Shown here: piece after piece, positions 45,166 to 64,000 of the stretch
Layout: each line of letters starts with the position of its first letter
Position numbering within the stretch: the stretch's first letter is position 1
NCBI GenBank assembly: GCA_002189035.1
Contig: NEEC01000010.1
Coordinates: 1,984,001-2,048,000 of the forward strand
DNA: 64,000 nucleotides
Origin: Utricularia gibba
Taxonomy: Eukaryota; Plantae; Magnoliophyta
Direction: 5' to 3'
Notes under the pieces: generated by a model
Database searches by the model: none
The model's input: only the letters and a program-made list of their open reading frames with translations
What the model was told of the DNA's origin: nothing
Position numbers and translations under genes: made by a program

Positions 45166-47517
45166 TCAACCCACGGACCTCACTGGGGTTCCGCCGAACA
45201 TCCATATTGCAGCACAGAAGACTCCTAGGAGAGACACTAGGAGCAAAAGACAACTAGTTCTACCTTTGCCTGTACTTGGCAACACATTATTACCTGATAC
45301 AACATTCATATATCTGGTGTTCAATCTCAACCCACTAAAACTGGACATTCGCTCTAGTGCCCGATTCACAAATGCGCGTTCGGAGGCCGAAGCAGGAGTG
45401 GTAGGTATAGACTCCATATATGACCAGAGAGCAGAAGAGAACCACGAGTCGTTACCGTCATCTTCTTGATTGATTCCATTTTCACCGGCTCCGGCGGTGG
45501 CGCGGAGGTTTACATGATCAAAGCTTTGATTATCATGGGGGAAACCTACGGAGGGGAAAACTCAAACAACATTAGCAGCTAAACTAGGATGGCAAGCCAT
45601 TACAGCACGAGCTCCTTAGGCTCAAACTCCCCCATTTCTACTAGGGCTCAAGAGTTTTCGCCACCTTGAAGATGACATGGTGGCCTTGCCATACCATCCC
45701 ATCTGATCAAGATCTCATTGTGTCAGTCAACAAAATGAAGAAGCAGCTGCAGTGCAGTGAATGAAGGTATTCCTTTCATATCTAAAAACACAAAATGGTA
45801 TCGCAGTTGGAGTACCTGGATTCGACAAAAGGGCGATTTCCTGGTCAGATTCCGCAGCGTGGATGCTGCAACTCAGCCCATCCGTGTAGCTAAATTCAGT
45901 CACATTTGTAGGATGTTGCTGCATTTGATGAGCTGCGCTTGACACTGTGCTCATCGTCCCGATATCGTAGCCAAAGGAACTAGAATAACCTTGGGCCATC
46001 TGCCCTGATTCACTGATTCCTCCATCACAAAGGATCGACGACGCATCTTGGAAATCATACTCATTTAAGCCATCTAGTTCATCCAGCAGCAGCTCCCCGT
46101 AGGGTTGAACGGGGTATTGGGTAGCTGGACAGGGGCATAGCAGATCATCCATCTCTAGGAAATCTTTATCTCCAAAGATTTCCTCCTCAGTGAGACCGGT
46201 ATCTAAAACACTAAGAGCAGGAGTGGAAGAGAATTCAGGCGTTTCGGGTAAATGCAACAGAGTCATGTCTGTCTGGTTGAAGTTACTGGCTGGCTCATCA
46301 ATTCTCTGAATAAAAGTGTGGGGAACCGGTGGTAGCACGTCCCTAGCAGCATGTTCAACCAAGTTAGTCTCGGTTCCCTGCTCAGCAACAAGCTGGCCAT
46401 ATGTGATGGGTTCATCTTCGATCTGATTCATGAATTCCCTGAGATCATCTAGAGAGGACAAATATTGACCATTTTTGGGCATGATTTCCTTGATAGGCAT
46501 GGTGTCATCAGCACTCTTCGTTACAGGATTCTCCCCAACAATGAAAGGGTGAACCTCTAGATCTTCTTTATCCCAATCTTCTTCCCGGAAAGGAGCACCA
46601 TATTGTTCACCATTTTTGGGACCGGGGCCACTTTTCTTGAACACCTTGTACAATGCATAGTATTCCTTGGCCGTTGCACATCTTTTGAGCTCCTCTTCAT
46701 CCAAGGTGTACTCATGCATAACCCAGTCAGTGCGGTCTCCTCTTGGCGCACGGCCTCTGTAGAATACCAGCGTCTTCTTTATCCCAGCAGCACGAGAACC
46801 ACATGAGATGATTCTGTCTTTCCCCGTAGCTTTCCAGTATCCATGACCTGTTGCCCGATTCGACCTTGCTCCATTTGGGTACTTCCTATCTCTAGGACTG
46901 AAAAAGAACCACTGTCTGTCCCCAGTTCGAAGCTTTGACATCGCTGCAAGAAATAAGATGAAAGCATGGTAAGCAACATACCCAATCGGTGCAGTTCAAC
47001 CAAATCAAACAAGACGAAACCACCAAATAATTTTGTAAGACAGCCAGATCCTTCACAGATTAACAAAGTCTTGAAGCAACAAGTACAAAGCGAACGGGGT
47101 TGGGCGTCTTCTAATCATGTCTTATTATTGATGGCGAACCTCAAACCAAAAGAACAAGCGTAGATCAAATTTTCCAACTTCGGAACACAGAACTAGGAAT
47201 TTCCAAGTGTCCGATCAGGTGACCAGAGAAAGATAACCAAACACATACAGAACAACACTTAAAACATAAAAAAATCCATGAAAAACAGGGATCAGAAGGC
47301 ACAAGTCAACGCGAACAGAATCGAAAGAAAACCCACCAGGCAATTCTTCAGGATCACACTTATACACATCAGTCTCGCCGATCACATCCGTAAGGTGGCG
47401 TTTACGGCAGATCTTCCTCTTCAGGTAGTACCCCACGAGTTCCTCATCCGTAGGATGGAATCTGAACCCTGGAGGGAAAACTCTTTCATTATCCATGGAA
47501 TCGGAATCCAATCCCAT
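45166..47517 (-). CDS. NAC017: Membrane-tethered NAC transcription factor (ANAC016/ANAC017 type), 3 coding exons
   Basis: [15 protein letters not shown]; [21 protein letters not shown]; [10 protein letters not shown]; DWVMHEY; [14 protein letters not shown]. The last exon (about 45547-45166) gives [22 protein letters not shown]...[11 protein letters not shown] and a TM helix [19 protein letters not shown]. Confidence 0.9.
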
Positions 47518-50047: not shown

Positions 50048-51703
50048 ATGCTGAGGAGTATCCAGAAGTTGATCGCGCTATCACCTTCCCCTGTGGAAGT
50101 GATCTTGAAATGGGAAAAGCCGGGCTCTTCTCCTCTCCTTCTTTTCGATGCCGGCCAGAAAGTAGTTTCCCAGTACTTGCAAGCTTTCGATGTCCTCCGC
50201 CAATCTCCCACCGACCACGATAAACTTATCTCCGATGCCCTGAAGAGGCTCAGCCGGGAGTTCGATGCTGTTTTGAAAAGATTGACTCAGCTCCAGGCTG
50301 GTGCTGCTTCAACTCTCCCTACTTCCACTACGGAGTCAAGTTCGGTGACCGATAGCACAGGAATCCCGTCCAGGTTTGAGGATTATGCTAAAGCTATTTT
50401 AGAGATACAGGGCGATGTTTTGATTGATTATTTACGCAGCGTAGCACTAAGAATGAGCTCCATGGATAAGATTGTGAAATATTATACAGAAAATAGAAGA
50501 TCTTTCCTAAAGAAGCATCTCAAAAGATTTGGTTTCGAAGAAATTCTAGTGTATGAGGGTGTTTCTTGGGATGCACTGCAGCCAAAAATGGGGATATGGG
50601 GTGACCTTTCCAGGATACTTGTTTGCTTGATTCAATATGAGAAGCAGCTATGCGAGAAAATCTTCGGAGATCATGCTGTGAGGGATAAATGTTTTATACA
50701 AACTGTTGGAAATATTGCTGTTAAACTCATTCGTTTTGCAAGAGGAATGGGCTTTCAGAAGAAGCAGCCTTATCATGGAATGGAGAGAGTTTTGGACTTG
50801 TACAGTTGTTTCATCTGGTTTAAGGCAGAGGCTGATGCCCTTTTCGTCTCAAAAACTGGAGAAACGATCAGAAAGTTATGCCAAGAAACCTTATTCAATA
50901 TTAAGAAGGAGATGGAAACCATGCTTCGTGATCTCAGAAAGGATGTTGCAGATGAACATTACGAAGTTCCTGATAATAGTTGTGAGGCTCTGCTACTAAC
51001 ACGCGAAGTGATGCACCAAGTAAGTCTCATAGCTAGAAATGGTAACCAGCTTGCAAGCTTAACCATAAAGGCTCCTCCTTCGAATGTGGATGGCTTGATT
51101 ATCCACCACGATGATATGCATGACAGAAACCCCCTGGATATGCACTTTATCTTCATCGTTGCAGTTCTGCATCTCAAGCTGAGCAGGAAATCTAAAAGTT
51201 ACAATAATCAGTCATCAAGGCTGTTATTCATGATGAATAACACACATTTTATGATCAGATCCATCGAAGGATCAAATAAGTTGCAAGAGAGTATTGGCTC
51301 TGAAACTCTCCGCAGGTTGAAAGAGGATTTGGATCTCAAGGCATCAAGTTACTTAGCATCTACTTGCAAGGAGCTGGTGAATTGTTTTGATGAGAAAGGG
51401 CTCCGTCGTCGAGAATGGTTCAAATCCTGGTACCATAAAGCCGCAGCCAAGAGGATTCAGGCTTTCAATTCTGCTTTGGAGACAATGCAGAGTAGTCTTC
51501 ATCCCCTTGGGATGATTAAGGATTCGGAACTCAGGACCAGAGTTTGTGACGTCTTGCATGCTACTGTGTCTCCAGCCTACATAAAATTTCTGGACAAGCT
51601 TGAGAAAAACCAGGAACTGGGGCTCGTTCTGCAACAGAATGCAAAATATCCTCCAGAAAACCTTCGCCATGTCTTATATGAGAAATCGTCTGTTCATGCT
51701 TGA
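50048..51703 (+). CDS. EXO70: Exocyst subunit Exo70, intronless, strongly diverged (closest remembered motifs are EXO70D-like)
   Basis: 551-aa ORF; VILKW..LLF, YEKQLCEKIF, LLLTREVMHQVSLI, PLDMHFIFIVAVLHLKLSRKSKSY, LFMMNNTHFM, IQAFNSALE, ELRTRV. Confidence 0.85.
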   Translation: MLRSIQKLIALSPSPVEVILKWEKPGSSPLLLFDAGQKVVSQYLQAFDVLRQSPTDHDKLISDALKRLSREFDAVLKRLTQLQAGAASTLPTSTTESSSVTDSTGIPSRFEDYAKAILEIQGDVLIDYLRSVALRMSSMDKIVKYYTENRRSFLKKHLKRFGFEEILVYEGVSWDALQPKMGIWGDLSRILVCLIQYEKQLCEKIFGDHAVRDKCFIQTVGNIAVKLIRFARGMGFQKKQPYHGMERVLDLYSCFIWFKAEADALFVSKTGETIRKLCQETLFNIKKEMETMLRDLRKDVADEHYEVPDNSCEALLLTREVMHQVSLIARNGNQLASLTIKAPPSNVDGLIIHHDDMHDRNPLDMHFIFIVAVLHLKLSRKSKSYNNQSSRLLFMMNNTHFMIRSIEGSNKLQESIGSETLRRLKEDLDLKASSYLASTCKELVNCFDEKGLRRREWFKSWYHKAAAKRIQAFNSALETMQSSLHPLGMIKDSELRTRVCDVLHATVSPAYIKFLDKLEKNQELGLVLQQNAKYPPENLRHVLYEKSSVHA

Positions 51704-52213: not shown

Positions 52214-55032
52214 ATGTCTGACGCAGTGTTGTCGGGGCTCCTGAGTCAGTTAGCCACGATCTTGCAGCAGCAGATCGAGGGAGAGGTGAGATTAGTATCC
52301 GGGGCTGAAAGGGAATTGAAAAAACTGGAGAAAGAGCTGAAATCAATCAAGGCTGTGATTGCTGATGCTGAGAAGAAGCAGATTAAGCAAGAGCAAATCA
52401 AAATTTGGCTTGAAAGCCTTAAAGATGTTGCCTTTGACGCCGAGGATGTTTTGTGCGAGTGGATAACGGCTACGAGGAAAGCAGAAATGTATCACGAGAA
52501 TCACAAGGTATTGGCTTCTCTAATGTTTTTATCTGTTGGTTTTGACAGAATTGTCCTGCGTCGTGGTGTTGCCCTAAAGATAAAGGAAATCAATGAAAGA
52601 CTGGTTGAAATTTCGGAGCAGAAAGATCGATATGGGCTGAACGCTTTTGCTGAAACCACATCATTTGAGAGGCCAAAAGCAGTATCGTATGTGGATGAGT
52701 CGCAGGTGATAGGTAGAGCTTCAGACAGTTCTAGAATTGTAAGCATGTTGTTGTCTGATGGTAATCAAGAACAGGTACTAAATGTGTTCTCTATCATCGG
52801 CATGGGGGCATTGGCAAAACAACCATAGCACAAATGGTGTACAAGGCCGAAGATGTTATGGATCATTTCGACAAGAGAGTATGGGTGTGTGTGTCTGATC
52901 CTTTTGATGAAGCCCGAATAGCAAAAGCCATTGTAGAAGACCTTGATGATGATGTTCCTTGCTCAGATGAGCTTGAAACCGCGACAAGAAAAATCAGGTC
53001 TCGTCTGGGAGGGAAAAGGCTCTTGTTTGTCCTCGATGATGTTTGGACCGAGGACTTCCTGAGATGGGAGCAGCTTTTCCACTCTTTCGCTGTTTGTGCA
53101 GCTGGGAGTGTTGTTCTAGTGACTACACAAAAGGAAACTGTGGCAAGAGCAATGGGAAGCAGAGACGAGATCCACTTGAACCTATTATCAGATGCTGAAT
53201 CTTGGTCCTTGTTCCAAAAGTTCGCATTTGCAGGGAGGTCTAAACAAGAATGCCTTGTCCTAGAGAGTGTGGGAAGGAAGATAGCAGAAAAATGCAAGGG
53301 ATTGCCCTTCTCTCTCAAAACTATAGGAAATCTGGTGAGGTTCAAGAAGACCCAGAATGACTGGCTTGATATTTTGAATAGTGAATTTTGGGAGCTTCCT
53401 GAAGGTGTAAGACTATTCCCCCCTCTAACGTTGAGCTTCTATGAGCTGCCTTCTCCTATGAGACAATGCTTCTCATTCTGTGCATTCTTTCCCAAAGATC
53501 ATGTAATCGAAGCTGATAACCTCATCAAGCTTTGGATGGCACAGGGCTATCTGATCCCTTCTGGGAATGTGGAGATGGAGACATTAGGCCAGGAAATTTT
53601 GGAAAATCTGGCTATGAGCTCTTTCTTTCAGGACATCAAGAAGGACAAAGATAATGAAAGAATTCTAAGCTTCAAGATGCATGATATGGTGCATGATTTT
53701 GCATTGTATCTAAACAGGAATGACTTCTCTTCTGTCAAGATAACAAATGGTTCAGCACAAAAGTTAGAGCCTTCCCATGAAGGGGCTCGTCATTTGATCT
53801 TGATACGAGAAAAAGACACCCGTTTCCCGGACATTCATCATAATGCAAAGAAGCTGGCTTCGCTTTGGGTTCAAGCTTTTTATGATTCACCTCGTATAAT
53901 AAAAGGTCAGCCAGAGAGCATTGATTCAGCCTGGTTTCTAGGCTTGAACCGCCTCAAGGCACTAGACTTGAGCAGAAACATGATAGGCGAGCTTCCAAAA
54001 GAAATCGGAAACCTGATGATGTTGAGGTATCTGAACTTATCACACAATCCATTTGTCGAGTTGCCTCAGACATTGTCTGAGTTATTCAATTTGCAGACAT
54101 TGAAGCTTAATTACTGTTGTCATCTGGTAAGTTTGCCACTGAAAATAAGAAAGTTGATCAACCTCAGGCATCTTGAGATCAACAACACTGAAAAGCTCAA
54201 GTCATTGCCCAAAGGTATTGGGCATTTGGTTTGTCTTCAGACTCTGAGCAAGTTCACCATTGTCCATGGGAACAGCAGCGTTCACGCACCTGTGAGTGAT
54301 ATGGAAGATTTGAAGAACCTCAACAACCTCAGAGGTTTTCTGAAGCTCGAAGGACTTGGATACATATCAGGTGCCACTGAAGCCATGGAAGCTGAGTTGA
54401 AAAAGAAGATTCATCTATCTGAGCTACAAATGGAGTTCAATGATTGCACAGGTAATGGTAGAGAGGATGAGGTGATCAAAGCTCTAGAGGTTCATGAGAA
54501 CTTACAGTCACTGCAAGTAAACTTATATGGGGGGACTCAGTTTCCTTTCTGGTTCACTAAACTGAAGAACTTGAGAAAGTTATGTCTGCAGGACTGCAAA
54601 AACTGCTCAGATTTGCCTCCTCTGGGAAGCTTGCCAGCCCTTACTATTCTCCGACTGGAAAGACTCAATGCATTAAAGTGTCTTGGAATGGAAGGATCAG
54701 CTTCAATGCCGTCGGATGAACAAGCATTGTTTCCAAAACTCGAAAAGCTCAAGATTTTGAAATTGGAGAACTGGGAAGAATGGCATGTCAATGATACATC
54801 CACAGGTGGATCAAAGCTCCATGATGGAAGCTTGTTGATGTTTCCTTGTCTCAGGTATCTGAAAATTTCACACTGCATCAAGCTGAAGGCGCTGCCACCA
54901 CCTCTTCTCCAGGGAAGTCCAATGGTGAAACTGCGGATCCGAGGTTGCCCATTTTTAAAGAAACAGTACAACAAAGAAACTGGAGAGCACTGGAGCCAAG
55001 TCTCACACATACCCAAAATCAGAATTTCATAG
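52214..55032 (+). CDS. CC-NB-ARC-LRR disease resistance protein (RGA3-like), about 939 aa once a -1 frameshift in the P-loop is corrected
   Basis: Rx-type CC (AFDAEDVLCEW); P-loop GMG/GIGKTTIAQ split at the G5 run 52804-52808; kinase-2 LFVLDDVW; GLPFS; CFSFCAFFP; MHDMVHD; LRRs (LRYLNLSHN, LQTLKLNYC, LRHLEINN). Confidence 0.9.
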
Positions 55033-57689: not shown

Positions 57690-57942
57690 ATGTTGATAGA
57701 CTCCTATATCCCTTTCTTCATCTCCTGTATGCATAGTTCTGATCATGCTTTATCTTTTCAACTGTCATATGCTGCATTGCTGCTACAGTTGAGATACAGA
57801 GTGAGGAGGAGGGAGAGGGGGGTTAATTTTCATTATGAAATATCATTTGCCTACAGATTAATTTCTATTTTTTTCCCCAAAAAGTGCCTAGAAATTACAA
57901 TTGGGGTTTGGGCACAGTGAATAGTCAAATTAGATTTTAGGG

Positions 57943-59196
57943 ATGGCGACGGCGGACGGGGAGCAGGTAAGAGAAATTGAAGAAGATGCGCCACTGCTAT
58001 CGAAGGGGGTGGAGTTGAATCTGCTGCGATTCAGCGACCGCCGCGGACAGTCACGACGAAGGTTCCGGAGGCGGAGGTGCATCTTTACAGGCAGGGGAAG
58101 GGTCCGATCGATGTCGTGAAAGTGGCACTGGGCGGTTGGGAACAGGATCAGTTGGATGTCGGGGAGATTCTGAATAAATACGGCTTCAAGTCGGTCTACG
58201 CATTCGTTCCAGGTTCTGGTCGCGGCGTGCCGATTCGGTTCATGAGGAATGGCCGGTCCTTGCTTACGTACAGAGATGGCTCAGTTATATACCTCGATGG
58301 TGAACCCAAGGTGAGCAGACAAGAAGCCGATGCTTCTATTTATTTATTTTTCTCCCAAACGTGTGTTGATTTTCCTGTTTTTTTTTTGGGATGTCGTGTT
58401 TGATCATGGAAACTTGCGTTTAGTAGGATTCTTAGATGAAATTCCGGGATTGAATTGATTTTTTGTTTAGAATGAAGAAAGTTTATGCAGTGATGGTGCC
58501 TTCAGTGTGGGTACTGGAAAGCATTTCAACTGTAAATTGTAGCCTTTTGATGCTTCTGCAAATTTTAGGCTATTTTTCTGTTTTTCATCCTCGCGGTCAA
58601 AAATTGGCGCCTTCCCGACTCCTCTCGTGGTATGTGTTTCCCGGGTTTGGACTGTTGGATTGCGCATTTTTTTGAGTTTCTTTCGGGGATTGTTGAAGTT
58701 TTATAGGAGATCATGGAGAAGCAGGGAGCTTTGTAAAGCCATTGAAGTTTTTCTGGAATGCAAACAGTTGCTGACTATTGTGTGCCTTTATTATGCTGGA
58801 AAATCCTGTGAAATCTTCCCTTGGTTGACTGAGTATTGTGATCTTGATCTGCACTTATCCTAAACAGTTGCAGCTCTTTGATCCACTTGTGGGTTTATTA
58901 TGTTTTCTCCCTCTACGCTTTTTTCTTGGTGAAGTTTACGGTTGTTGTTAATGCAGGACTCACTGGTTCAACCGATCACCAAGATTATAGTAGGGGTTGC
59001 CGTTGTAACTCTGATGATTATGTTTGTCGTTAGAGAGACTCCAGAATGGGCAAAGAAGCTTAACTTTTCCGGCAGTGGCATCCCTCCATGGATTCTGGCC
59101 TGTGCAGTTATTGTTTTCACACGACTGAGGAAAAGAACCCGTAAGTTCTTGGAAGCAAAACTCAGTGACAAGTTGTTTTTCCCTTTCGTTTTGTGA
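57943..59196 (+). CDS. Conserved plant membrane protein of unknown function; 5' end needs either +1 G at 58005-58009 or a 68-nt intron
   Basis: EVHLYRQGKGPIDV..LGGWEQDQL; GRGVPIRF; YLDGEPK|DSLVQPITK; TM helix; PPWILACAVIVFTRLRKRTR. Confidence 0.75.
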
Positions 59197-59377
59197 GCAA
59201 AAATTACATAAACAGTGAAGTCCAAAATCCGGAGGATGTTTCTCCCAGACGGTGTAAAAGATGCTGCTGTTAAGCAGCAACTGATGGTTTTGTTGACTGT
59301 AATAAAATGGATGAGATGTATTGCACTATTTTCAAATCTACAAGTCACAGCATCTTCCCCGTTGCCCAAGTCTCCAT

Positions 59378-61572
59378 TCAAGTGCACTCAAACAGCTCTT
59401 GGTCGGAATCTGACCTGATTTGTTCAAGGAATTTGAGGGCTTCTTCCATTGAAGGCCTGTTATTAGGTTCATAATTCAAACATATTCTAGCAAGCGCTGC
59501 AGTAGCATGGGCAGCCTTGGGAGTATACCTCCCGTTCAGTGAAGTATCCATGATATTCGCCAACTGTGCTTTTTTATGCAAGCGAGGTCGCAACCAATAG
59601 ACGAGGTTGGTCCTCCCATGTGGACGACTCGGATCGTTGACACGTGATCCCGTAAGCATTTCTAGCATCACGACTCCAAAACCATACACATCACACTTGG
59701 CAGTCAAGTGACCTGTGTATGGAAGAAAACCAGTTAGTATTAGAAAGAAATGTATTACAATTCCAAAAGAGATTAATCAGTTTGGTAATAGGAAAACTGT
59801 CTTTCATCAAACGCTCCAGGAAGGATCCCGGTTTCATTTCTCAATCCACAGTGAGGATTCTTACCTGTTTCCATGTACTCAGGAGCAGCATAACCTTTCG
59901 TGCCTATTATCTGGGTGGTTACGTGGCTGAGGTTTTCTGCAGGGCCAGATTTTGCCAGACCAAAATCACCGATCTTTGGACTATACATCTGAGAGGCGAG
60001 TATCAAAAATGAAATGCAAGAAAAACGCTACGCATGATTGCATCCAAAGTTGGCGAGGCGACTTAGCATGAAAGGCTGTGTGTGTGGTCTCATCATGATG
60101 AAAAGAAACTAAAACGCTAGAGGAACTAGCCATGAACTAAACTACAGCATGCATGCAGCATGTGGGGCTTACGTCATGAAGCAATATGTTTGATGTCTTT
60201 ACGTCTCTCCATATAATGTTCAATGAGTGCAACAATGCAAGTCCTCGAGCAACTCCAGTTAGTATTAAAAGCCTCGTATCCCATCCAAGCACTGGACGAT
60301 CCTCTGTTAATAAAAACTGTACATTATAAGGCACTCGTGCTTCATGAATCTGGGTGGTTGGAAGGGAAACATGATCGCTCACTGTTAAAAAGGTGAACAT
60401 CCAGGCTGCCCAATTCCATGAATTCATATACAAGTAGTAGTTCCTTGTCTTCGCAGCAGTAGCCCAGTAGCTTGACCAGGTTAGGATGAGAAATCTTTGT
60501 AAGATGTATGATCTCCGACTGCAAGGACACTATAATAAGCTTTTAAAATGAAGAAACAATATCTATGTACTCCAAAAGCACGGGACAACTTTGCGCTAGA
60601 AAAGCACCCAAGAACAAAAGGCTGGGAAAGTTTTTTCTCGTTATTCAGACAGACAGAAAATTGTAATTGGAATAACACTTCAAAAATAATTGCTCGAATG
60701 ACACTCAGGATACATGGAAAGCAAGCACATGATGATAACTGAGGCAATGAGGAACCAATTAATCATGTTTTGTTACAGTTGAAGTGAGTGCGAGAGATTC
60801 ATGAACTAGGTGAATAAGGACAAAGCTACTGTTATAGACAAGTAAAATGAACAGAAAAACTGCAACCACTTGAGATTTCAAAGTTACCTTCCACTCTGCA
60901 ATCCCTTGCATGCTATCAGAACTCAACCTTTTAACAGCAACTGGGTAGCGTCTTTGAATTCTACCATCAGAATTCTTGAACCAACCTTTATAAACTGTCC
61001 CAAAGCCCCCACTCCCTAGGGCTGTACTGAAGTTTTCTGTAGCGGCCCGCAGTTCTGAAAAGGAGAAGACTCCATCTCCGGGAGCTGTAAAATATGCATT
61101 TTTTCAGTCCAAAGCTGACGAAGAATAGTGTTAATGAAGCTTGGAAGCACGAGTGTTCTTCCAGATCTAAAAATTGCTAGTTTTTTTTATTTTTGACCAG
61201 TGAAAAGATTTATCTAGCATACATGAGAATGCGAAGCTACGGAGTTAAAGATCGCGGACCAGTTTCCCAAATAGCTGTTAAACAGGATCGCAGAAATAGG
61301 ACTACAAAATAGAACCTTCCAGCACAATGCATCCATTTACTTGATGCAGCAGAACTCTCTTGGGGAGGGGAAGTTGGAATAAGAAAAATGTTTCTCGAAT
61401 ATGCTATGCATGATTCAGTACCTGATACTGGAATTGTGGAATCTTCCATTGATGACTCTTTGGTCTTCCAAACTGCATGAAAAGGGAGAAAACGTGCTAG
61501 CTTACCCATCGCAGTTTTTCTTCCATGCTTTTTACTGCCTGACAACATTTGGTTCTTCGATTGTGCCGTCAT
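59378..61572 (-). CDS. RLCK-VII (PBL/PIX13-like) Ser/Thr kinase; either a separate gene or the second kinase module of the upstream CrRLK1L gene; 6 exons
   Basis: [13 protein letters not shown]; [13 protein letters not shown]; VAVKRL; [11 protein letters not shown]; [13 protein letters not shown]; IGDFGLAK; [14 protein letters not shown]|[14 protein letters not shown]. All GT-AG junctions are phase-compatible (exon ends 60888, 60383, 60173, 59865); stop at 59378. Confidence 0.85.
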
Positions 61573-61997
61573 ATCTGTGGAGCCAGAATGTATGGTTGTA
61601 AGTGGGAGAAAACCTGTTTTGATAACTGGGACAAACTAAGATACCCTAGTTATTTAAAGCTCACCCACTGCAGTTTTTCTTCCATGCTTTTTACTGTCTG
61701 GCAACATTTGGTTCTTCGACGGTGCCAGTGGGGCTGTTTCATTAGCTGGTCCAAAGTTTAATACCCTAGTTCTCTCGACTCGCTCAGAAAATGAAACTGC
61801 TATGGGAACTGGGATAAACTCAGGTACCTTAGTTTCCTCAAGTTCACCCATTGCAGCTTCTATTCCATGCTTTTTACTGCCTGACAACATTTGGTTATTC
61901 GACTGTGTCATCGGGCTGAGAAGCCAGAGGGTGCGGTAGTAAACGGGAGAAAATCTGTTTTCCTAAGCGGGATAAACTCAGATACCCTAGTTATCTC
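61490..61997 (-). repeat. Three degenerate tandem units (about 158, 183 and 159 nt) between the two kinase domains
   Basis: Anchor ccatgctttttactg at 61865, 61682 and 61523; anchor ataccctagt or its variant at 61982, 61824, 61761 and 61641; each unit encodes S(K/N)NQML(S/P)xSKKHG. Confidence 0.9.
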
Positions 61998-64000
61998 ATT
62001 TGGCATCAAAGATTTGCCATGTTCCTGCTTTTCCAGTGCAAGTTCCAGGTTTACAATGACATGAGCTAGTGTTGGGCGTTTACTTGGCTCATCATGCAAA
62101 CATTTCTCAACGATCCCAAGAAATACTGCCAGACTATCTGGTGATATTTCCTTTTTTATAGATTCATCAATAATCAAGTCACGTTCACCATTCCAGATTT
62201 TATTCCGAGCCCAGACAATTAGACTGCGCCTATCCTCTGCTGCGAATGGCTCCACTGCTGGTCTGCCACAGAGTACCTCTAACAACACCACACCAAAGGA
62301 GTAAGTGTCACTCTTGGCGGTGAATCTCTGAGTTATGATATAATTTGGGTCCAAGTAACCAGGTGAGCCCTTCACGTGTGTGCTTACTAGACTTTGCAGC
62401 ACCTTCCCACTCTCCCATTTAGCTAAACCAAAATCTGAAACCTTTGCTACAAGCTTTTCACCAAGTAGAATATTTGAGGACTTTATATCACGGTGAATGA
62501 TCTCATGTCCAGTGTGAAGATAGTCTAGCCCCCGAGCAGCTCCAATGCATATGCCCAGTCGTTGGATCCAGGAGAGAGAGGAGGCTTCTGCATTTTTCCT
62601 AGAGAATTTATACAGATGATCAGCCAGCGATCCGCAAGGAATGTACTCATAGACAAGTATCATTTCACGATGCGCCTTGAAGTATCCAATGAGAGAAACC
62701 AGGTTGAGATGCCGCAGATCAGAAAGAGCTTCAATCTCTGTCCAGAACTCACGCTTCCCTTGCTTGGAGTTTGCCTTCAATCGCTTAATGGCCACTGTCT
62801 CCCTTCCATTGTCTATTGTCCCTTTGTAGACGTTGCCAAAGCCTCCCCTTCCAATCAGAAATCGGTCATGGAAGTCATCCGTACTAGATTTGATCTCATC
62901 AAGTGAAAAAAGACGGCATAGCCTTTTAGCCCTTGCGGACGGCTTGTTTTCAGCCACATCTGTGAACTCAACTCCGAGGATCTTTCGCAGGAGGTGAGCA
63001 ATAACGTTGGCCAAACAAATCAAAATAACGATGACATTGGAAAATCCATTTCTACGACCAATAAGCAAGAAGAATGCATGCAGACCAATGAGTGGCGATG
63101 AATTTGGCACTGATGGCAAGATGGGATTTAGGCCTGCAAGACTGTTGTCGAAATTGCTGATCTTGAATATCTCAAATCCCTCAAAAAGATCATTTCCATC
63201 AGTGAATCCATATTCAGAATGGAAGGAAACAACAATGTCACGCTTGGCGTCCCGTTTTCGTCCACTCAGCACCACCATGTAGCTCTTTTGCCATAAGAAA
63301 CCTTCTTCTTTCCTCGACTTCAGAACGTCCTCGGCAGTGGCTGCGACTACCCCATCAATGACAACCGAGAAATCCTTTCCTCCGGCTTCTACAGTTTTGA
63401 GTCCAATCTCAGAGAAGTGAACCCTTACCATGTACCTAAATCCCACATCCACTGATGTCTTCCATGTCATGTTCTTCTCAATCGTTGATTTATCCTTCTG
63501 CTTCAAATTTCTTTTCCATGTGCGTGCAAGGTTTCCTACATCACCAACCAGGGTTGGAACTGAATCCAATTTCATGTCCACTCTTCGCACAATTTCTACA
63601 GCCACACCCCTATCGATATTCTGTCCAACTAGTGGAACCCCATTTGCTCCCCCTGACAGGACAGACCAGAAGGCAGTGAAACAATCTCAATGCCGTTTAC
63701 AAATGCATAAGCCTTGAATAATGGAGACGGTATCGGAGTAAAGATTATATCTAGCGGCTGATTTTCTTCAACCGTCAAGCAAAATTCCTTGACAACAGTA
63801 TCCAGCGCAAGTGCGCGGGCGGTGATGGAGGCACTGAAGTTATATAAAAGAGTGAAGGAACCAGCTTCAACACTGAATAAGTCGGTGATATCCTCGAATC
63901 CCTTACCAAAATGAAGACGGATGAACTTCTCGCCGGGATTGAGCCGAAATCCATACGAAAATTGCGCGCGAGAAACCCGAGCCGTGGAATACGGAACCAT
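61908..64000 (-). CDS. Malectin-like receptor kinase (CrRLK1L/FERONIA-like); 5' end runs off the window; apparent -1 frameshift at the C5 run 63649-63653
   Basis: YSTARVSRAQFSY; KFIRLHF; AFVNGIEIVS; GFRYMVRVHFSE; FEGFEIFKIS; TM segment; CRLFSLDEIK; GRGGFGNVYKG; VAIKRL; IIHRDIKSSNILL; VSDFGLAK; KGSPGYLDPNY. Confidence 0.9.

Follow-up and report, generated by a model that had tools for sequence, protein, structure and literature searches.

In a 64,000-nucleotide stretch of the Utricularia gibba genome (assembly GCA_002189035.1, contig NEEC01000010.1, positions 1,984,001 to 2,048,000; hereafter the window), the minus strand from 64000 to 59378 encodes two protein kinases that follow one another in line. 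The parts are arranged as a malectin-like ectodomain truncated by the window edge, one transmembrane helix, a kinase of the CrRLK1L type (kinase 1), a repeat linker and a complete receptor-like cytoplasmic kinase (RLCK) of the RLCK-VII type (kinase 2). This locus is very probably one real plant gene that encodes a fused, receptor-type tandem-kinase protein, a degree of confidence that applies to the identity of the gene and not to its mechanism. Judging from the alignment of the ectodomain to residues ~76-380 of its relatives, about 75-110 N-terminal residues, the signal peptide included, would lie outside the window. The features of the locus are listed below with the evidence for each in brackets; the RNA contigs and joints are those of four RNA runs (X1, X2, X3 and X5; two studies) that were aligned to 58900-64000.

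63045-64000, minus strand: malectin-like ectodomain, about 304-319 residues (41-53% identity to relatives bearing PF12819/PF11721)
63649-63653, minus strand: frame break 1, a run of five G on the minus strand that is one base short relative to four RNA runs (RNA insertions)
62988-63044, minus strand: single transmembrane helix FSNVIVILICLANVIAHLL, followed by basic RK (hydropathy)
62058-62858, minus strand: kinase 1, CrRLK1L type (Pfam Pkinase 1.4e-47; FERONIA kinase 5.5e-83)
61908-61915, minus strand: frame break 2, a CCC run on the minus strand immediately 5' of the TGA at 61910-61908 (RNA insertion behind 61912)
61488-61996, minus strand: repeat linker of three diverged units, 61996-61836, 61835-61653 and 61652-61488 (repeat search and alignment)
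61575-61664, minus strand: 90-nucleotide GT-AG intron, phase 1, within the linker (joint 61574/61665 in all four RNA runs)
61422-61574, minus strand: linker exon, DMTAQSKNQ... (RNA contigs including X5 record 20)
61085-61421, minus strand: intron of 337 nucleotides, phase 1 (joint 61084/61422 in all four RNA runs)
60888-61084, minus strand: kinase 2 exon 1 with the G-loop GSGGFG and VAVK (RNA contigs; best PDB match PBL2, 5e-8)
60383-60518, minus strand: kinase 2 exon 2, alpha-C to hinge (RNA joints 60518/60888 and 60303/60383)
60173-60303, minus strand: kinase 2 exon 3, catalytic loop (RNA joints 60303/60383 and 59988/60173; motifs)
59863-59988, minus strand: kinase 2 exon 4 with DFG, activation loop SHVTT and APE (RNA joints 59988/60173 and 59710/59863; motifs)
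59378-59710, minus strand: kinase 2 exon 5, C-lobe, with the stop TGA at 59380-59378 (Pfam kinase C-lobe; PDB RIPK, BIK1 and PBL2)

As assembled, the window does not hold a single open frame across these parts. An open reading frame (ORF) of 565 amino acids at 61908-63605 on the minus strand takes in the last part of the ectodomain, then a hydrophobic segment and the kinase, and a second ORF in a different frame, 63629-64000 on the same strand, continues past the window edge. The ectodomain frame breaks at the C5/G5 run 63649-63653 and runs into a stop at 63631-63629, the kinase 1 frame closes at the TGA at 61910-61908, with which an ATG overlaps, and the frame that follows closes at the TAA at 61656-61654. 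Kinase 2 is spread over the five exons between 61084 and 59378 on the minus strand.

A sequence-only reading of this DNA had described a FERONIA-like ectodomain, membrane span and kinase with HRD and DFG intact, followed on the same strand, past a coding-type repeat linker and with no AT-rich spacer, by a complete PBL-type kinase. Each of these elements was recovered on the minus strand. Kinase 1 matches Pkinase at 1.4e-47 and carries IIHRDIKSSN, the five exons of kinase 2 have their best matches in RIPK, BIK1 and PBL2, and the linker consists of three units of ~160-180 nucleotides whose GC content is like that of coding sequence, staying at 0.41-0.45 throughout. The linker was also considered as an intergenic spacer with its own promoter, and this was rejected.

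Five RNA runs from the same organism contain 52-60% of the words sampled from 59300-64000. The contigs of the four aligned runs show six joints, all of them GT..AG on the minus strand, which define the introns 59711-59862, 59989-60172, 60304-60382, 60519-60887, 61085-61421 and 61575-61664. The splice from TCAG/GTACTG to the APGDG exon, which had been predicted from the letters of the genome, is used in all four runs (joint 61084/61422). The intron 61575-61664 had not been foreseen; it takes out the in-frame TAA at 61656-61654 together with a TAG, and its joint 61574/61665 has CT..AC ends on the plus strand in all four runs. All four also carry one extra base behind 61912, just 5' of the kinase 1 stop (on the plus strand G in X1 and X3, T in X2 and X5), which takes the frame beyond that stop and into the linker. 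A second insertion of one nucleotide, again in all four runs, lies within the C5/G5 run, either behind 63648 (C) or behind 63650 (A). Two 1-nucleotide insertions and the 90-nucleotide intron thus clear all three obstacles in the RNA contigs.

When the six introns and the two insertions were applied by script, one open frame of 1137 codons resulted, which enters at the window edge and closes with the stop at 59380-59378; if the two insertions were left out, the longest open stretch was 592 codons. The chance of the 177-codon linker staying open is ~2e-4. A single contig of 568 nucleotides (X5 record 20; 61996-61665, 61574-61422 and 61084-~61003) leads from the tail of kinase 1 through both linker splices into kinase 2. 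RNA coverage is unbroken over 61294-64000 and contig depths are alike for kinase 1 and kinase 2. Identity between contigs and window is 98-100%, and one contig differs from the window by a single letter plus the insertion across 874 nucleotides. The mature RNA has a single open frame through both kinases. A separate transcription start and polyadenylation site between the kinases, which according to the sequence-only reading would have spoken for two genes, did not come to light, as RNA across 61570-61996 is continuous and spliced. That the RNA runs might be DNA was rejected, since the five ordinary introns are skipped.

A convergent neighbour of higher expression lies at ~57940-59605 on the plus strand, with an intron at ~58310-58954 and its last exon from 58955. 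Its 3' untranslated region overlaps the last kinase 2 exon, and one contig (X3 record 13; 58955-59605) fuses both genes. As this record merges two genes, the contigs are not safely read as transcripts.

The malectin-like assignment of the ectodomain is based on its relatives, since the Pfam match is below cut-off. On the window ORF, Malectin_like was matched weakly, at an E value of 0.0033 and 17 bits against a cut-off of 24.5, the N-terminal ~75-110 residues being outside the window. The ectodomain aligned over ~300 amino acids, with 41-53% identity, to residues ~76-380 of full-length relatives with PF12819/PF11721. Pfam gave no match in the 123-residue N-terminal piece of the ectodomain or in the 50-residue linker exon. 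Only one strong Kyte-Doolittle peak was found (2.3 over 19 residues), at residues 320-338 of the partial protein and followed by RK, which gives a single transmembrane helix between ectodomain and kinase, as expected of CrRLK1L receptor kinases.

Among solved structures the FERONIA kinase is the best relative of kinase 1 (5.5e-83), above Pto and SYMRK, and kinase 1 groups with proteins named CrRLK1L. We take it to belong to the At5g39000/MEDOS-like group of CrRLK1Ls, the Arabidopsis MEDOS cluster being At5g38990/At5g39000. The kinase 2 exons, compared with solved structures as they stand in the window, matched RIPK, BIK1 and PBL2 at 3e-21 to 7e-20, versus 1e-10 for BAK1 and 6e-9 for FERONIA. 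For kinase 2 of the Paulownia orthologue the separation was wider, with PBL2 at 1e-115 versus 1e-70 for the next class.

Both kinases retain the G-loop, the VAIK Lys, the alpha-C Glu, the catalytic Asp, the Asn and the DFG motif. The APE motif of kinase 1 reads DPNY, where most relatives have DPDY or DPEY, and kinase 2 has WRD where its relatives have YRD (HRD/YRD); the activation loop of kinase 2 keeps SHVTT. The pairing of a kinase with a pseudokinase, common but not obligatory in tandem kinase proteins, is not what this sequence predicts, as both domains keep their catalytic residues. Two kinase domains in one polypeptide are supported by transcripts and orthologues, while the assembled DNA alone breaks the frame at two 1-nucleotide sites. 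A GDK motif, the AvrPphB-type site, is absent from the activation loop of kinase 2, and kinase 2 as a PBS1-like AvrPphB decoy was rejected for this reason. The MGEL and MGKL sites of the linker, as we read them, misfit the N-myristoylation consensus, so the RLCK would have no membrane anchor of its own. Kinase 2 is therefore classed from its sequence as an RLCK-VII domain and not as a free-standing RLCK, its frame in the RNA being continuous with that of the receptor.

A first search, with the kinase 1 ORF as query and covering proteins of up to 989 amino acids, placed Lamiales proteins on top, and most matches had two kinase domains. With a longer query, many proteins of 1150-1300 amino acids with Malectin_like, Malectin and two kinase matches were found. 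Such proteins occur in the orders and genera below.

Lamiales: Penstemon, Paulownia, Buddleja, Erythranthe, Phlomoides, Sesamum, Orobanche, Striga, Salvia, Andrographis, Castilleja
Ericales: Rhododendron, Actinidia, Diospyros
Solanales: Lycium, Solanum, Capsicum, Anisodus, Cuscuta
Cornales: Cornus

Two-kinase homologues, whose absence from all relatives the sequence-only reading had named as grounds for seeing here two ordinary neighbouring genes, are hence abundant. The RNA-based protein aligned to the Paulownia protein P0122 in one BLASTP segment (residues 2-1127 to 76-1245, 52% identity), and similar end-to-end alignments were obtained for about 14 other Lamiales proteins, including those of Buddleja, Orobanche, Striga, Erythranthe, Salvia, Sesamum and Andrographis. 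More distant proteins of Rhododendron, Solanum, Lycium, Capsicum, Cornus, Actinidia and Diospyros have the same layout. In more than 20 species the collinearity of the orthologues extends across the linker, and the linker itself can be aligned to Lamiales relatives, with which it shares the motif GKKDGRK.AMHKLSRLWPW.AFW and internal repeats typical of the family.

The exon structure of the relatives agrees with a fused gene. In Paulownia DNA, exon 1 is one open exon for residues 1-912, containing the ectodomain, kinase 1 and the linker, and it is followed by five RLCK exons. Solanum stenotomum has two tandem copies (L004 1001-5609 and 19490-23803), in each of which exon 1 reaches from the ectodomain into the N-lobe of kinase 2 (residues 1-927/945). 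In Logan transcript contigs from two runs, one ORF continues uninterrupted from kinase 1 into kinase 2.

In a tree of 92 kinase domains, from which stand-alone RLCK-VII sequences were left out and in which the kinase 2 clade is unresolved inside, kinase 1 fell into a 12-row clade (support 96/95) composed solely of first kinases of Lamiales fused proteins. Together with the FERONIA best match (5.5e-83), this clade bears out the CrRLK1L class that had been expected for kinase 1. Kinase 2 fell into a 24-row clade of second kinases (support 98/99). Branch lengths were 0.31 for kinase 1 and 0.62 for kinase 2, with a median of 0.14. Because the kinase 1 tree roughly tracks the asterid orders, the data suggest that the fused gene was inherited vertically. 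By its sequence and predicted layout, the gene is the local member of a family of the same architecture that is conserved across asterids. The central proposal of the sequence-only reading, a receptor kinase with an in-line RLCK-VII kinase in a dicot, is thus upheld by the RNA contigs, the collinear asterid orthologues and the single-exon ORFs of kinase 1 and linker in Paulownia and Solanum.

Two further groups of tandem kinases were observed in these comparisons. P0001, P0224, P0228 and related Erythranthe and Buddleja proteins have another, highly divergent second kinase on CrRLK1L proteins; these second kinases form a clade with long branches and support of 100/100 outside the CrRLK1L and RLCK-VII groups. 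This divergent Lamiales clade may represent another tandem-kinase lineage of independent origin, or else a pseudokinase. Beyond asterids, the nearest relatives of kinase 2 are RLCK-RLCK tandem kinases, namely P0179 (Vigna), P0184 (Acer), P0201/P0210 (Musa), P0191 (Macleaya) and P0205 (Dillenia). In Vigna and Acer the two RLCK domains are mutually nearest, which points to recent internal duplication.

The closest known proteins are asterid proteins with malectin, transmembrane, kinase and kinase parts in this order, such as Paulownia fortunei Pfo_003014 (P0122, 1270 amino acids), Buddleja alternifolia Bualt12G0124600 (P0125) and a Striga asiatica 'protein kinase' (P0138); the Erythranthe guttata, Salvia miltiorrhiza and Andrographis models carry the names 'receptor-like protein kinase At5g39000' or 'FERONIA'. 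The U. gibba gene resembles them in its domain order, in 45-52% identity from end to end, in the linker motif GKKDGRK..HKLSRLWPW.AFW and in having a large first exon and five RLCK exons. It differs from them in its triplicated linker module, in an extra intron of 90 nucleotides and in the long branches of both kinases, and it lacks a Ser-rich segment of ~30 residues that precedes kinase 2 in the asterid relatives.

FERONIA and RIPK are separate, interacting receptor and RLCK-VII proteins in CrRLK1L signalling. Kinase 1 is nearest to FERONIA and kinase 2 to RIPK, BIK1 and PBL2; unlike in Arabidopsis, where the two are encoded by separate genes, they would here be covalently joined in one chain.

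A CrRLK1L-1 kinase joined to an RLCK-VIIa-2 (pseudo)kinase is also the structure of RLK-2, the sunflower Or_Deb2 candidate for broomrape resistance (bioRxiv 10.64898/2026.02.12.705495). Reveguk et al. 2025, as that preprint cites them, place this domain structure in eudicots only (bioRxiv 10.64898/2026.02.12.705495). Helianthus and Lactuca members were among our homologues, the Helianthus ones being named RLK-Pelle-RLCK-VIIa-2 and CrRLK1L-1 by their source. As in the sunflower RLK-2 class, one polypeptide contains a CrRLK1L-type kinase and, C-terminal to it, an RLCK-VIIa-type kinase. However, the sunflower proteins are ~660 amino acids long and cytoplasmic, with a pseudokinase as second domain, whereas the gene described here has an ectodomain, a membrane span and catalytic residues in both kinases; that the sunflower proteins are without ectodomain or membrane span, and a link to At5g39000, come from published work (PMC8866362).

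Two RLK-Pelle kinase domains in tandem are likewise found in Pm36/WTK7-TM, Rpg1, WTK1/Yr15 and WTK3/Pm24. Of these, wheat WTK7-TM/Pm36 has a C-terminal membrane span and was described in 2024 as the only tandem kinase with a membrane-targeting motif to have been validated functionally (PMC11006675); WTK7-TM is thus membrane-associated as well. The cereal tandem kinases differ in their kinase families (WAK, LRR_8B and RLCK_8), in that WTK7-TM has no ectodomain, and in being proven resistance genes, whereas this gene is known from sequence. In the literature, we came upon no functional study of the form that bears an ectodomain. The architecture is not new, as dozens of such proteins are already annotated and a CrRLK1L-1_RLCK-VIIa-2 class of tandem kinases has been described (bioRxiv 10.64898/2026.02.12.705495). 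Only the lineage-specific triplication of the linker module and the 90-nucleotide intron go beyond what is catalogued.

The linker is a Ser/Lys/Pro-rich segment of ~180 residues. Each of its three units carries a ...NQML.GSKKHG(R/I)K.A.G.L module, and the units align with a mean column identity of 76%; Tandem Repeats Finder reported nothing in the linker, the units being too diverged and containing indels. A latent splice donor, ATGGGT[G/A]A[A/G]C, is present in three of three units and a latent acceptor (CTCAG or CACAG) in two of three; of these sites, splicing uses the unit 2 donor and the unit 3 acceptor alone. The intron is missing from the Paulownia orthologue, where exon 1 runs uninterrupted through residues 1-912. 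Because of the latent sites in the repeat units and of this absence, the intron looks like one that was gained through tandem duplication of coding sequence. We consider it improbable, though worth stating, that a natural switch came about in this way. A duplicated coding module would have set a latent donor (GG/GTGAGC) upstream of a latent acceptor (CCACAG/), and either retention of the intron, with its in-frame TAA, or a 1-nucleotide length polymorphism beside the kinase 1 stop would then choose between a single-kinase and a tandem-kinase receptor within one species.

Further along the window, an intronless Exo70 gene (50048-51703, plus strand; Exo70_C 1.2e-44) lies directly upstream of a gene for a coiled-coil nucleotide-binding leucine-rich-repeat protein (CC-NLR; 52214-55032, plus strand), and an ORF with a NAC (NAM) domain (45727-46941, minus strand) lies a few kb from Exo70. 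The CC-NLR and Exo70 genes are 4-9 kb from the tandem-kinase gene, which is circumstantial for a role in resistance.

By analogy with signalling through separate receptors and RLCKs, a ligand or cell-wall cue at the ectodomain would activate kinase 1, kinase 1 would phosphorylate the tethered RLCK at the conserved Ser/Thr of its activation loop (SHVTT), and kinase 2 would relay the signal to cytoplasmic targets. The protein may then be a covalent, hard-wired version of the relay from receptor to RLCK, an interpretation to which we give an even chance.

Several observations weigh against an intact fused receptor with two active kinases. Stops are present in the assembled window at 63631-63629, 61910-61908 and 61656-61654. 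Contigs may merge overlapping transcripts, as X3 record 13 does in joining the 3' untranslated region of the convergent neighbour to the last kinase 2 exon, and no full-length read spans the distance from ectodomain to kinase 2. A near-identical tandem paralogue may be the expressed copy, or the source of some RNA contigs, and the 90 nucleotides may be missing from the DNA of the plants that provided the RNA instead of being spliced out. A non-catalytic role of kinase 2 is favoured by its long branch (0.62 versus the median of 0.14) and by the loss of its catalytic residues in some Solanaceae orthologues.

The main functional alternative accepts the fused protein and sees in kinase 2 mainly an integrated decoy, or a regulatory module akin to a pseudokinase, that would be targeted by effectors and watched by an NLR, possibly the CC-NLR at a distance of 4 kb; such a role has been proposed for cereal tandem kinases. 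The same pairing of kinases in the sunflower Or_Deb2 candidate, with a pseudokinase as RLCK half (bioRxiv 10.64898/2026.02.12.705495), is in keeping with it, as are the long branch and the Solanaceae losses just mentioned, the tandem duplication in Solanum and the Exo70 and CC-NLR genes close by. Kinase 2 of this gene and of most orthologues, however, keeps every catalytic motif and the Ser/Thr of the activation loop; the conserved ectodomain and membrane span point to extracellular sensing; kinase 2 lacks the AvrPphB-type GDK site; and proximity of an NLR is no evidence of pairing. We regard a predominant decoy function as possible but doubtful.

With regard to the two frame breaks, the fused gene is compatible with the assembled DNA if they are 1-nucleotide homopolymer errors of the assembly, and this is probably what they are. 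Both sit in C/G runs. Assembly error is the likeliest cause because the neighbouring CC-NLR gene is broken alike: its Rx_N and NB-ARC/LRR parts lie in adjacent ORFs in different frames, the break being a G5 run (52805-52809) inside the P-loop, where one added G restores the canonical GMGGxGKTT. RNA contigs cover four indel sites, at which nearly every run has one base more than the window, the exception being X2 with a loss of two nucleotides at 59237. Such losses in this assembly probably split real genes, and other genes may be falsely split as well, which bears on all findings in this genome.

Alternatively, this copy could be truly frameshifted in the sequenced plant, as a decaying or split allele that gives rise to a truncated ectodomain or to no more than a single-kinase protein, the intact transcript coming from other alleles or from a paralogue. 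The assembled sequence does hold two independent breaks within 1.8 kb, differs from every RNA run at both of them, and belongs to a family in which tandem copies occur in Solanum. We nevertheless judge a broken allele to be unlikely. Both breaks lie in C/G runs, the third of identical kind falls in the invariant P-loop of the neighbouring CC-NLR, and the window lacks one base at the four RNA-covered sites in comparison with nearly every run (X2 at 59237 excepted). No run was listed for a 60-nucleotide query spanning 61912/61913 in the window's own state, which is weak evidence, as only two words were sampled. The indels aside, there is no other decay, with 1137 codons and no extra stop.

It is very improbable that the fused gene is in truth two ordinary adjacent genes, one for a CrRLK1L receptor kinase and one for an independent RLCK-VII, whose transcripts overlap in the linker and were joined by the assembler. 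The assembled window does have the TGA at 61910-61908 after kinase 1 with its overlapping ATG, and overlapping transcripts at this locus are indeed merged in de Bruijn contigs (X3 record 13). Yet there is no stop between the kinases in any RNA haplotype, both linker introns preserve the frame, more than 20 species have orthologues whose collinearity includes the linker, kinase 1 and linker share a single exon in Paulownia and Solanum (in Solanum with the N-lobe of kinase 2), the Met-Gly sites of the linker, as we read them, misfit the N-myristoylation consensus and would leave the RLCK without its own membrane anchor, and contig depth is similar for the two kinases.

Tandem kinases are emerging as a class of immune receptors in plants, and functional work on them has been almost entirely on cereal, cytoplasmic forms. 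The locus described here, which has transcript support and whose conserved orthologues range from Lamiales to Ericales and Solanales, is a well-defined dicot example in which a cell-surface CrRLK1L is predicted to be covalently tied to an RLCK-VII, a class that relays receptor signals and is attacked by pathogen effectors. It can be used to ask whether tethering replaces the encounter of receptor and RLCK, or creates a guarded decoy.

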